From contig NIVC01003869.1 in the NCBI GenBank assembly GCA_002269645.1, positions 1 through 64,000 of the forward strand: a DNA stretch of 64,000 bases. Direction: 5' to 3'. The position numbers were made by a program, and so were the translations under genes. Positions 516-61,681 of this stretch are shown here, one piece after another. The notes under the pieces are model-generated. The model made no database searches and was not told the DNA's origin. It saw only the letters and a program-made list of their open reading frames with translations. This DNA is from Macrostomum lignano. Lineage: Eukaryota. The stretch's first letter is position 1. Every line of letters begins with the position of its first letter.

Positions 516-12106
<11,591 letters not shown>

Positions 12107-12637: not shown

Positions 12638-13574
12638 AAATGCTCTTTGATTCACCATTTAATAAATAATTTCAAATTGATTAATTATCAGAGGCTACAC
12701 TTGCTTATATGATATTTGCATCTGTAAAACTACTATGCGCCTCCCTCATCAGTGCTATTCAAAATATTCTTCATCTATTACTCTAATACTTCATCAAATT
12801 TGCTGACAGAGGTTTCAATAGAATAACAAGTATGAATTCTCAAATCTGTATTTTTTTAATAATTTACTAATCAACTAGTTTATTGTCCCAAACGAAATAT
12901 ATTTAGTTAATATTAGTATACTCTGAATGGTATAAGTATATGGTATTATATGATTAATGTGTTATTTTTCCAACGATATTTATTATTAGTGTGACATTAG
13001 TTATTTTAAAAATAACATAAAAATATATTGCATTTTTATTTCATCTTAAAATTTGTATTGTATAGTATTGGTGTGGATTAAATGGGGGCCCTGCCGCAAG
13101 CTAGTGAATATCCAAGCATATGATTATGATTAATGATGTAATCTCGTTAATTGTGTTTTATTGGCGTATATATATTTACATATGAAATATGAAATATGGA
13201 ACTTCGGAACAGCACTGACGCACTGCAGACTAAAATATATATGAAATTTATTAATCTACGTGTTGTCTGCCATTTTGTCTGCAATCTGCCAGTATTCTCT
13301 TAATGTTCCTGTTCAAGGCACTGTAAATAGTTTTCTTGATGCGTTTTTTAGCTTCACTTTTCTGCTAATTTATTCTTGCAGTCAGCAAAGAGGCGAGCTA
13401 ATTCATACCCTAAGCACGCTCTCACAGAGTGTACAGCAGCCCAGACTTTCTGACCGTCAGGCGTGTACAGTCTCTGTGCCTTCTGGGGGCTGGGCCTCGT
13501 AGGTGTGAAATTGATCCCCTGATCAATATTCGTGCATATAAGCCGCGCGGATGTATGTGGCCGCGCACGGGACT

Positions 13575-14240
13575 ACAGTGGGGCGCCAGGTACAGAGGGG
13601 GCGCCAATTACAGAGGAGCGGTGGCTACAGAAAGGGCCAAACAGCTACAGGGGGCGCTAGCTACAGAGGGAGGGGGCGCTAGCTACAGGGGGCGCTAGCT
13701 ACAGAGGGAGGGGGCGCTAGCTACAGGGGGCGCTAGCTATAGAGGGCGCCAGCTACAGAGGGCGCCAGCTACAGAGGGCGCCAGCTACAGAGGGCGCCAG
13801 CTACAGAGGGGACGCCAGCTACAGAGGGCGCCAGCTACAGAGGGCGCCAGCTACAGAGGGGACGCCAGCTACAGAGGGAGAAGCGCTAGCTACAGAGGGC
13901 GCCAGCTACAGAGGTTGCCAGCTACAGAGGGGACGCCAGCTACAGAGGGAGGGGCGCTATCTACAGAGGGCGCCAGCTACAGAGGGCGCCAGCTACGAGT
14001 ACAAAGGGGGCGCCAGCTACAGAGGGAGGGGGCGCCAGCTACAGAGAGAGGGGCGCTAGCTACAGAGGGCGCCAGCTACGAGTCCTAAGGGGGCGCTAGC
14101 TAGAGGCGGCGCCAGCTACAGAGGGAGGGGCGCTAGCTACAGAGGGCGCCAGCTACGAGTACTAAGGGGGCGCCATGCAGCTACAGAGGGAGGGGCGCTA
14201 GCTACAGAGGGCGCCAGCTACAGAGGGGGCGCTAGCTACA
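13575..14240. repeat. GC-rich ~16-bp minisatellite GCTACAGAGGGCGCCA
   Basis: Direct reading. Confidence 0.92.
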
Positions 14241-14584
14241 AAGAAGGCGCCAACTTCGGAGAGCGGATCCTGATAGCTCCTTTGCAAGCTACCCAAAATC
14301 TTTTATAATTCTGTAGTCATTATCAGCATCCCGAATCAAACGCAGCATTCGTAAGCTTAGGTTGCAGTTCTGTTGCAACAGTGGGCAGCTGTAAAAAGCA
14401 TCTTAGCATTCAATCCTGCTGACAGGATTCGTCCAGCGCATCTTTATTCGGCATAATTTAGTTTCCAAGTTGGAGTGTTTTGTCAATGTTTGAGTAGCTC
14501 ATACAGCTCTAGTTCACGAACAGAAATTGTAAATCAATAATATTTGTTATAGTTTGATCATCCTGCTGCACGCGATCAGAACGT

Positions 14585-15058
14585 TCAGCCGAGAAACTCC
14601 GAGATTCTCTTTCTGTAGCGGCGCTCGTTTTGGCGCAGCCACTTGGCGAGAGCCTCAGCCGATGTCTCCTCCTCCGGTGGGGGCACCGGCCACGGGCTGC
14701 CGCGTTTTCCTAGAAACTCGGACACTCGCTTTTCTATCGGGCTGGGTCGGTCGGTGTCAACTGGGGGGGGTGCGGTGAAATTAAGGAGTTGATTAGCGAA
14801 TCTAAGCCTGTCTGTGTGTCTGTCTTAGTGTCTGCCTGCCTGTCTCTCTGTGTGTCTGTCTTAGTGTCTGCCTGTCTGTCTGCTTGTCTGTGTCTCTGTC
14901 TGTCTCTCTGTCTTAGTGTCTGCCTGCCTGTCTCTCTGTGTGTCTGTCTGTCTGTCTGTCTGTCTCTCTGTCTTAGTGTCTGCCTACCTGTCTCTGTGTG
15001 TCTGTCTGTCTGTCTTAGTGTCTGCCTGTCTGTCTGTCTGTCTGTCTTAGTGTCTGCC

Positions 15059-15101
<43 letters not shown>

Positions 15102-15376
15102 GTGTGTGTCTGTCTGTCTGTCTGTCTGTCTGTCTTAGTGTCTGCCTGCCTGTCTGTCTGTCTGTCTCTCTGTCTTAGTGTCTGCCTGTCTGTCTGTCTG
15201 CCTGTCTGTCTGTCTGTCTGCCTGCCTGTCTGTCTGGCTGGCTAATCACCCACCCAACAAAGGGTGTAGCACACAGAACCGTCAATAAAGTTCTTATTCG
15301 TCTTACACGGCCTGGGCTCCACAGTCACTGCCGTCATCGCCATCAGCAGCATCAAAGCGAAGCGTGCAGATTTCAT
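14585..15376 (-). CDS. EFLamide/TRH-type neuropeptide precursor, 81 aa (exons 15376-15307 and 14760-14585)
   Basis: Spliced translation: [81 protein letters not shown]. It has a hydrophobic signal peptide, a GTAAGA donor, a ccccag acceptor with matching phase 1, and two dibasic-flanked xSEFLG peptides. A minus-strand AATAAA lies at 14448-14443. Confidence 0.85.
14806..15240. repeat. (TGTC)n-based microsatellite with TTAGTGTCTGCC interruptions, filling the neuropeptide intron
   Basis: Direct reading. Confidence 0.93.
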
Positions 15377-16017
15377 GAGATCTTCCGCTGATATTTCCAA
15401 CAATAACAAACGAAAGAAGATTTTGTTGCTAGAAGACAAGTGGAATCGAAGCAGAGCAATTGTTGCACCTTATATTGACTGAACGAGCCGGCCTTCTCAC
15501 TGGCTGCTCGCCTTAATTGGGCAGGGAAATCTGGCAAAACTTTTTTTCTTGTCCGGCTCCTCTCTCTTTGACACGAGTTCCTGTTTGAGCAGCTGGGTGC
15601 ATCGCTGCCTGTGCTTATAATTTACTGCCTTTGCTGCTGAGAAAATTGTCAATTTGAACGTTTGCAAAACTGTCATGTGTGGGCGATTACAAGGTGGGTG
15701 GGGGGGGGGTGGTAAACCGCGCCGCTGCACGCGCTGCCACAGATAATAAATAAATTTAGCATCTGTGCGCGCTGCTGCCTTGCTTCTTCTAAACTGGGGA
15801 ATTCTGCCGTATGAAGTAAAGTTAGCGTAGAGTTGCTCCATGATCATTGCAAACTGATGCATACACGAGGTCAGGCCGGTTAAATTGAAATCCTGCGAGC
15901 TATTGAAAACTTCGTCATAACCAGAAACAGAATTGCGACATGATCGACTCTGCATACCTCGAACTGCGGCTCTTCTTTCGAGTCTACGGCGTTTTGACTG
16001 CCAAAAATAATACGGTC

Positions 16018-16385
16018 TAACCTAACTGTAACCCTAATCCCAACTCTAATCCCTAATCCCTATCCTTAATCCCTAATCCCCAAATCTACTCTAATCCCTA
16101 ATCATTAATCCCTATCTCGAATACCTAATTCCTAATCCCTATCCCTAATCCATAATCCCTAATTCCTAATCCCTACTGTAATCCCTAATCCGTAATTCCT
16201 AATCCATTATTCCTAATCCCTACTCTAATCCCTAATCCCTAATTCCTAATCCATTATTCCTAATCCCTACTCTAATCTTTAATCCCTAATCCAAGGACTA
16301 CTTAAGTAGACACTATATACGTTACTTACTCGTACATGTAAGTCGTCCTTGCCTTAATCTCTATTCCTAATCCCTAATCCCTAGT
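16018..16385. repeat. Degenerate telomere-like tract (CCCTAA/CCCTAAT)n
   Basis: Mostly 7-bp CCCTAAT units with variants; interstitial position. Confidence 0.85.
16292..16351. mobile_element. 60-bp TIR mini-element (CAAGGACTAC family)
   Basis: Ends CAAGGACTACTTA / TAAGTCGTCCTTG. Flanks ccctaatc / ccttaatc (7/8 match, TSD-like). Confidence 0.7.

Positions 16386-17643: not shown

Positions 17644-61681
<44,038 letters not shown>

Follow-up and report, generated by a model that had tools for sequence, protein, structure and literature searches.

A candidate EFLamide-type (TRH-type) neuropeptide precursor gene with a microsatellite-filled intron, and a putative multi-copy paralogue, in the flatworm Macrostomum lignano

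The DNA studied here is a stretch of 64,000 nucleotides from Macrostomum lignano (contig NIVC01003869.1, positions 1 to 64,000 of the forward strand; hereafter the window), which is C3869 in the genome of 764 Mb and 5269 contigs that was used for all genome searches. On its minus strand lies a small gene whose two coding exons are separated by a microsatellite, and whose product is probably a precursor of short amidated peptides of the EFLamide family, i.e. the protostome peptides of the thyrotropin-releasing hormone (TRH) type. The features of the locus are the following:

15474-15469, minus strand: TATA-like box TATAAG, placed by motif position; a putative promoter element
15460-15377, minus strand: unspliced 5' untranslated region (UTR), annotated for the window copy and colinear with the N-terminal extension of PAA49470.1
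15376-15307, minus strand: coding exon 1, 70 nt, with the ATG at 15376 and a phase-1 end; it encodes Met1 to Pro23 and the first base of Phe24
15376-15323, minus strand: predicted signal peptide, about residues 1-18, by heuristics
15306-14761, minus strand: intron, 546 nt, GT..AG (GTAAGA...CCCCCCCCAG), filled by a (GACA)n microsatellite
14760-14585, minus strand: coding exon 2, 176 nt including the TGA; propeptide with two peptide copies and an acidic, proline-rich spacer
14731-14702, minus strand: first peptide unit, predicted VSEFL-NH2, peptide codons 14725-14708, by translation and by a pattern match at C3869:14703-14722
14614-14585, minus strand: second unit RKR-ISEFLG-stop, predicted ISEFL-NH2, peptide codons 14605-14588 and TGA 14587-14585, by translation
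14448-14443, minus strand: AATAAA, a putative polyadenylation signal about 140 nt past the stop, kept in all three genomic copies of the gene

The donor at the end of exon 1 reads ...CCGT/GTAAGA, the acceptor is the pyrimidine-rich CCCCCCCCAG/TTGAC, and exon 2 closes with GGC TGA. Splicing leaves 246 nt which translate into a protein of 81 amino acids (aa) with no internal stop, and the junction 15307>14760 generates the codon for Phe24. Left unspliced, the exon-1 frame reaches a TAG after 22 intron codons. Most of the intron is occupied by a degenerate (GACA)n array, which Tandem Repeats Finder places at 14808-15240 with a period of 4 and 108.8 copies (consensus CTGT on the plus strand, GACA on the gene strand). 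The initial annotation of this DNA had proposed such a two-exon, minus-strand gene of 81 aa with a microsatellite as its intron, and translation recovered all of the listed elements, each in its place. It had also called the gene hidden and missed by the open reading frame (ORF) track. The latter is literally true, as the stop-to-stop list holds only spurious microsatellite ORFs at this locus (14714-15178 on the plus strand and 14734-15174 on the minus strand). The former applies to that track but not to public data, as a transcript-derived spliced model is already in GenBank.

The 81-aa product is matched at 100% by the Macrostomum lignano proteins PAA85705.1, PAA49470.1, PAA76107.1, A0A1I8IUX7 and A0A1I8JID1, which confirms the flatworm host that had been suspected from the letters of the sequence. 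The UniProt entry A0A1I8IUX7 is exactly the 81-aa product, and the same product is contained in PAA49470.1, the GenBank model for the window copy, which sits on a contig of 72,809 bp. In GenBank these proteins carry the names "hypothetical protein BOX15_Mlig018869g1/g2/g3, partial", and their exon junction is exactly as read here. The GenBank annotation was produced by merging a genome-guided RNA-seq assembly with a de novo transcriptome, ORFs being called by TransDecoder (PMC5730564). Because the annotation was built from RNA-seq and transcript assemblies, the junction 15307>14760, which had been predicted from the DNA and recurs in these models, already has transcript evidence. A Pfam scan of the 81-aa protein (E<=1) yielded no family. 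The label "PSCyt2 domain-containing", given to A0A1I8IUX7 and A0A1I8JID1 in UniProt, is not reproduced by Pfam and looks spurious, and Mlig018869 is not mentioned in the searchable literature. The gene model is thus public already, but without functional annotation.

Three near-identical copies of the gene are present in the genome on separate contigs (C3869, C307 and C841), a redundancy which fits the duplicated state of the assembly known from earlier work (PMC5730564). The introns of these copies measure 546, 990 and 290 nt, with identical donor and acceptor. Their exons differ by five synonymous changes and one non-synonymous change (P50L), and in exon 1 only a single synonymous site varies. 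An error of annotation or assembly could have produced the locus, or it could be a pseudogene in decay whose frame is open by chance. The extreme repeat content of the region, together with copies so alike that they give no proof of purifying selection, would be compatible with this. However, the reading frame, both splice sites, the TATA box and the polyadenylation signal are kept in all three copies despite intron sizes from 290 to 990 nt, the models are derived from transcripts, and the coding changes are predominantly synonymous, so that we consider an artefact or pseudogene most improbable. The identical public product, the three splice-conserved copies, the transcript-derived models and the occurrence of the 8-residue unit KR[VI]SEFLG twice within 81 residues make the gene more than a product of chance. 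That it is real and transcribed we regard as practically certain.

The public models also define the ends of the transcript. PAA49470.1 begins IALLRFHLSSSNK..., a direct genomic translation from 15460, and its N-terminal extension IALLRFHLSSSNKIFFRLLLLEISAEDL equals the translated window 15460-15377. As an in-frame TAA is located at 15472-15470, three codons upstream of 15460, and the GenBank models are given as "5' partial", the assembled transcript should start at about 15460 in the window copy and at about 15442 in the other two. These implied 5' ends (15460-15442) lie some 15-32 nt downstream of TATAAG. The mRNA would thus appear to be compact, at about 470 nt, and its 5' UTR to be unspliced. 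A non-coding exon at 16010-15958 joined to an acceptor at 15388 had been held plausible in the initial annotation. This exon found no support, since the GenBank model is colinear from 15460 through the ATG, and we reject it on account of the transcript-derived ORF running across 15388 together with the bounding TAA. In the upstream flank, about 570 nt from the TATA box, a degenerate 7-mer array (CCCTAAT)n was found at 16032-16292 (TTAGGGA on the gene strand), which looks like an interstitial repeat of the telomere type whose unit is longer by one base.

The N-terminus of the predicted protein resembles a signal peptide. It has a basic n-region (K2, R5) and a hydrophobic core of 14 residues (F6-V19; Kyte-Doolittle 9-residue maximum 2.6), and by the (-3,-1) rule there are two candidate cleavage positions, A-M-T/A and A-V-T/V, with small residues at -3 and -1. 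The heuristics for n-region, core and -3/-1 residues therefore agree with the signal peptide that had been proposed. The two peptide copies have convertase-type boundaries (EKR/VSEFLG/KR and YRKR/ISEFLG/stop), and both terminate in SEFLG, i.e. in a glycine as potential amide donor after an E-F-L core. Translation thus confirms two Gly-extended, dibasic-flanked xSEFL peptides in the precursor, with VSEFL-NH2 and ISEFL-NH2 as the predicted products. For these predictions the standard rules for prohormone convertases, carboxypeptidases and peptidylglycine alpha-amidating monooxygenase were applied. The signal peptide would be removed upon entry into the secretory pathway and a prohormone convertase would cleave after the dibasic sites. 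A carboxypeptidase would then remove Lys and Arg from the end of the first copy, a step not needed for the second copy, in which the glycine is the last residue. The monooxygenase would finally convert the C-terminal glycines into amides, yielding VSEFL-NH2 and ISEFL-NH2. Released from peptidergic cells, these may activate at least one TRH receptor (TRHR)-type receptor of the worm, a step modelled on FSEFLGamide in Platynereis and EFLamide in the locust.

The genome was scanned with a degenerate DNA pattern for SEFLGKR. Apart from the three copies of the window gene, clustered matches were obtained at two places on C181 and on C618, where a second, predicted EFLamide-type gene is located in three copies (L034, L036 and L037):

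C181:328846-327935, minus strand: second EFLamide-type gene, by pattern scan
C618:384325-383630, minus strand: second EFLamide-type gene, by pattern scan
C181:83666-84271, plus strand: second EFLamide-type gene, by pattern scan

This gene consists of three exons. Exons 1 and 2 encode MSSKANYRPIAYWLIIGAILIQLAQLPIVLA/AEA..., which contains a good predicted signal peptide, while exon 3 carries a first unit and then 6-16 more, mostly RPVSEYLGKR, the last one being RPVSEFLG-stop. The units follow the pattern [RQL]PV[ST]E[YF]LG-KR and number 7, 10 and 17 in the three copies. An AATAAA is found about 80 nt downstream of the stop. Both genes have a predicted signal peptide and KR-flanked xVSE[FY]LG units, but the second gene differs from the window gene in having three exons instead of two, 7-17 units instead of two and mostly Tyr in place of Phe (RPVSEYLG). 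Common to both are also a phase-1 intron before the peptide exon, a final Gly directly at the stop and 19 out of 20 identical nucleotides in the SEFLGKR codons. By these three characters the sequences point to the second gene being a paralogue of the window gene.

A word-indexed homologue search of the public protein collection with the 238-aa paralogue gave no match, not even to itself, and an exact look-up of the three paralogue models in the same collection found none of them. The second gene thus apparently lacks public annotation. Transcripts overlapping repeat annotations were left out of the GenBank submission (PMC5730564), and the second gene may have been dropped by this filter.

Further matches of the SEFLGKR pattern were rejected. 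Those at C37:1135992 and C37:1136159 fall into a non-coding tandem repeat of the GTTTCTAGGAAA type without an open frame, and the remaining isolated matches are at chance level (16 observed versus 17 in a reversed control). In the region C37:1135800-1136300 (L035), the GTTTCTAGGAAA-like repeat holds the SEFLGKR codons twice by chance, which calls for caution in searches by motif only.

A small protein with a predicted signal peptide could of course be secreted for other purposes, e.g. as a gland, adhesive, seminal or antimicrobial protein which is not cut into amidated pentapeptides at all. A size of 81 aa and a middle part rich in Pro and Glu would suit many secreted proteins, and the Pfam scan without a domain would fit as well. 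On the other hand, dibasic sites flank the repeated unit precisely and its last residue is always Gly, and the paralogue consists almost wholly of 7-17 such units, which is a hallmark of prohormones and not of structural proteins. We therefore hold such a secreted protein to be very unlikely, and the window gene to be, with high confidence, an amidated-peptide precursor.

Relatives of the 81-aa protein were searched by phmmer (HMMER) in 1.84 billion representative proteins. Beyond the M. lignano protein itself seven matches were obtained (E 4e-6 to 6e-4), six of which are repetitive prohormone-like precursors. P0113 and P0116 contain units of the type RISEFLGKR (KRARISEFLGKR), repeated up to about 15 times; P0115 has units KRYSEFLGKR and KRFNEFLGKR, P0114 has KRYGEFLGKR, and KRIREFVGKR is found in P0117 and P0119. 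The exact hexamers VSEFLG and ISEFLG, in the same KR context, thus recur in independent multi-copy precursors. In pairwise alignment, similarity to these proteins does not extend past the peptide units and cleavage sites. When the 81-aa protein was used in a word-indexed homologue search, nothing beyond the M. lignano cluster came up. Eukaryotic contigs of the metagenome and SRA assemblies SRR25760724, SRR16916499 and ENA ERZ23487155 (L031-L033) hold single-exon ORFs with about 15 copies of such units, among them ARISEFLGKR, in which the hexamers of the flatworm peptides recur.

Peptides of this kind are known from several protostomes. The decapod GSEFLamides comprise AMGSEFLa and AVGSEFLa of the lobster (PMC4696782), the arthropod EFLa is treated as a TRH orthologue and activates its receptor, a TRHR orthologue, in Locusta (PMC7294237), FSEFLGamide of Platynereis acts as ligand on a TRH-type receptor (PMC5818035), and the molluscan fulicins are counted among the TRH-type peptides as well (PMC11890989). 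Like the arthropod peptides (lobster EFLamides, TVGTEFLamide of Pyrrhocoris, EFLa of Locusta), those of the window gene would end in -SEFL-NH2 made from SEFLG followed by basic residues. However, the arthropod EFLamides usually have seven or more residues with a Gly before SEFL, whereas the window peptides are predicted pentapeptides with Val or Ile in this position, and unlike the arthropod precursors that of M. lignano, a member of the Platyhelminthes, contains only two copies in 81 residues. The core xSEFLG of FSEFLGamide is identical to that of the window units, Platynereis is also a spiralian, and its pairing of peptide and receptor has been shown experimentally. There, the amide comes from an additional Gly and the first one stays in the peptide (FSEFLG-NH2), while in the window units the Gly stands directly before KR or the stop, so that Leu-NH2 is predicted as in arthropods. 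In length and layout VSEFL-NH2 agrees with fulicin, with which it shares the form of an amidated pentapeptide x-x-E-F-[V/L]-NH2. Fulicin is Phe-D-Asn-Glu-Phe-Val-NH2. Its C-terminal residue is Val and its second residue is in the D-form, whereas the predicted window peptides have Ser as the second residue and Leu as the last. Judged by its sequence, the window gene likely belongs with the EFLamides.

If so, a TRHR-type receptor would be expected in the same genome. Human TRHR, which is identical to PDB 7wkd chain R, was used as the query, and four paralogue groups of TRHR-like G protein-coupled receptors (GPCRs) with two or three copies each were found in M. lignano:

C369:159208-159822, C31:395433-396047 and C368:145590-146204: TRHR-like paralogue group
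C2527:11174-11851, C267:320313-320990 and C1763:60800-61477: TRHR-like paralogue group
C527:469383-469976, C1837:212058-212651 and C1901:170760-171353: TRHR-like paralogue group
C2137:10626-11126 and C118:36245-36745: TRHR-like paralogue group

The locus given first for each group is that of its first exon. These groups show 39-48% identity to human TRHR over transmembrane segments (TM) 1-5, and their second exon 49-53% over TM6-7. All other M. lignano GPCRs have at most 37% identity, with scores well below those of the four groups. In the PDB, each of the four groups matches TRHR best (135-160 bits), with a lead of about 50-75 bits over the receptors of ghrelin, neuromedin U and cholecystokinin (83-88 bits), which come next. 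Relatives of group A which are named TRH receptor or TRH receptor-like come from nemerteans, bivalves, mites, spiders, nematodes, vertebrates and sea urchins, and also from Echinococcus, Taenia, Hymenolepis, Fasciolopsis, Trichobilharzia and Schistocephalus. In protostomes the receptors of ecdysis-triggering hormone (ETH) form the sister clade of TRH receptors, and ETH receptor does not appear as a name among the group A relatives. A single TRHR is usual in invertebrates, relative to which the four groups are an expansion. On these similarities, the receptor of the window peptides is rather likely, if less so than the family membership of the peptides, to be of the TRHR type.

Taken together, the repetitive SEFLGKR and EFVGKR relatives, the multi-copy paralogue in the same genome and the TRHR-clade GPCRs support the EFLamide/TRH-type assignment that the initial annotation had made. 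We think that the window gene is probably a preproneuropeptide gene of the EFLamide family (protostome TRH-type, fulicin-like) whose peptides act on TRHR-type receptors. Several points weigh against this assignment. The shared motif comprises just 5-6 residues and the cleavage sites, and the E-values are modest and helped by repetition. The matches themselves are unnamed proteins from metagenomes and SRA assemblies, which show a family pattern but not a family name. With 81 aa and two copies the precursor is atypically small for a family that is mostly multi-copy. The signal peptide call is made by heuristics only, and processing, amidation, neuronal expression and receptor activation are all predictions. 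The copies of the gene have diverged by 1-2% with only six coding differences, which leaves dN/dS underpowered. On the side of the receptors, the PDB holds no ETH receptors, so that the reciprocal test excludes them only via the names of relatives and the high identity to vertebrate TRHR.

The xSEFL motif might also have arisen by convergence in a genuine amidated-peptide precursor. The gene would then encode a lineage-specific flatworm peptide ("npp") that signals through some other receptor, and something else would serve as ligand of the TRHR-like receptors. The motif is short, nothing beyond the peptide units and cleavage sites can be aligned with the HMMER matches, and flatworms are rich in lineage-specific peptide families and orphan rhodopsin GPCRs (PMC6114109). 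Nevertheless, exact VSEFLG and ISEFLG in the same KR context are found in independent multi-copy precursors, and the known ligands of protostome TRHRs carry just this C-terminus (PMC7294237, PMC5818035, PMC11890989). Moreover, ligand-like and receptor genes are both present in the M. lignano genome, and no other candidate TRH-type ligand turned up. Convergence therefore appears unlikely to us, though less so than the two alternatives discussed above, and membership in the EFLamide family is preferred.

The surroundings of the gene are dominated by tandem repeats, which make up roughly half or more of the window. Positions 1-37500 are densely filled with mini- and microsatellite arrays that are unrelated to one another and whose periods range from 4 to 84 bp, e.g. 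at 1759-4994, 5695-6690, 8271-10111, 10720-11533, 13573-14252 and 21140-21785, and further at 22512-23263, 23886-25687, 28624-29906, 34166-35020 and 37120-37464, the last being a second (CTGT)n array. From 38682 to 61223 extends a satellite of 22.5 kb with the 42-bp unit TATAGGATAGGGGAGTTGAGGACCGTAGCTGAAGGACACTAT in 537 copies (99% matches) and a strong, constant GC skew of +0.5 (G-skew). Three of the reading frames of this array stay open for about 6000 aa, surely without coding for protein. Two exon-sized ORFs on the plus strand encode a TRPM2-like domain (23261-23749; PF25508, E 3.5e-17) and an Ion_trans domain (33496-33996; PF00520, E 1e-5), and a gene for a TRPM-type cation channel with long, repeat-filled introns probably spans this region. 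An ORF at 11513-12106 (plus strand) has weak HEAT-repeat matches below the Pfam cut-offs and possibly forms one exon of an adjacent gene. Apart from the gene described here, only these TRPM-like exons and the HEAT-repeat ORF, all on the plus strand, were found as coding signals in the window, and an Rfam scan of the window gave no family at threshold.

The initial annotation had known of no described TRH-type precursor from flatworms. In 2018 TRHR-like receptors were noted in flatworms, with the ligand "not yet reported in flatworms" (PMC6114109). A larval cell atlas of the polyclad Prostheceraeus crozieri later named a TRH2 proneuropeptide in larval neurons of a ciliomotor type (2023; PMC10396302). 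A survey of TRH-type peptides from 2025 covers molluscs, annelids, arthropods, nematodes and priapulids, but no flatworm (PMC11890989), and a review from 2026 gives TRH only for the polyclad larva, planarians and parasites having lost many conserved peptides (PMC13551398). The polyclad TRH/TRH2, which we compare by name only, belongs to a different flatworm order and is the sole flatworm TRH-type proneuropeptide named in the searchable literature. At the level of the phylum the novelty is therefore smaller than supposed, whereas for Macrostomum no TRH-type ligand is named in the searchable literature. The terms EFLamide, EFLGamide and SEFLamide gave no flatworm match in the same literature, although an earlier description elsewhere is possible. 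The two M. lignano genes could supply the first ligands known by sequence for the TRHR-type receptors of flatworms, a family expanded to four groups in Macrostomum and kept as orphans in tapeworms and flukes, a claim we can make only tentatively and would rather doubt.

TRH-type signalling dates far back in bilaterian history and has links to growth, feeding and metabolism. The finding of such a candidate ligand gene in a flatworm fills an expected gap and overturns nothing; to the specialist it will be unsurprising. It adds a transcript-supported candidate ligand gene, a multi-copy paralogue and four candidate receptor groups, and thereby reduces the question of ligand and receptor to a simple receptor assay. 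If the assignment is true, a TRH-type growth and feeding axis would become testable in a transgenic flatworm that is tractable by RNA interference, and a fulicin-like D-residue would be possible in the M. lignano peptides. The motif [ST]E[FY][LV]G followed by basic residues can be used to search for the ligands of the TRHR-like GPCRs of Echinococcus, Taenia, Hymenolepis, Fasciolopsis and Trichobilharzia. These parasite receptors are of interest as anthelmintic targets, and VSEFL/ISEFL-NH2 together with PVSEYL/PVSEFL-NH2 would then offer a direct route to deorphanising the TRHR-type receptors of tapeworms and flukes.

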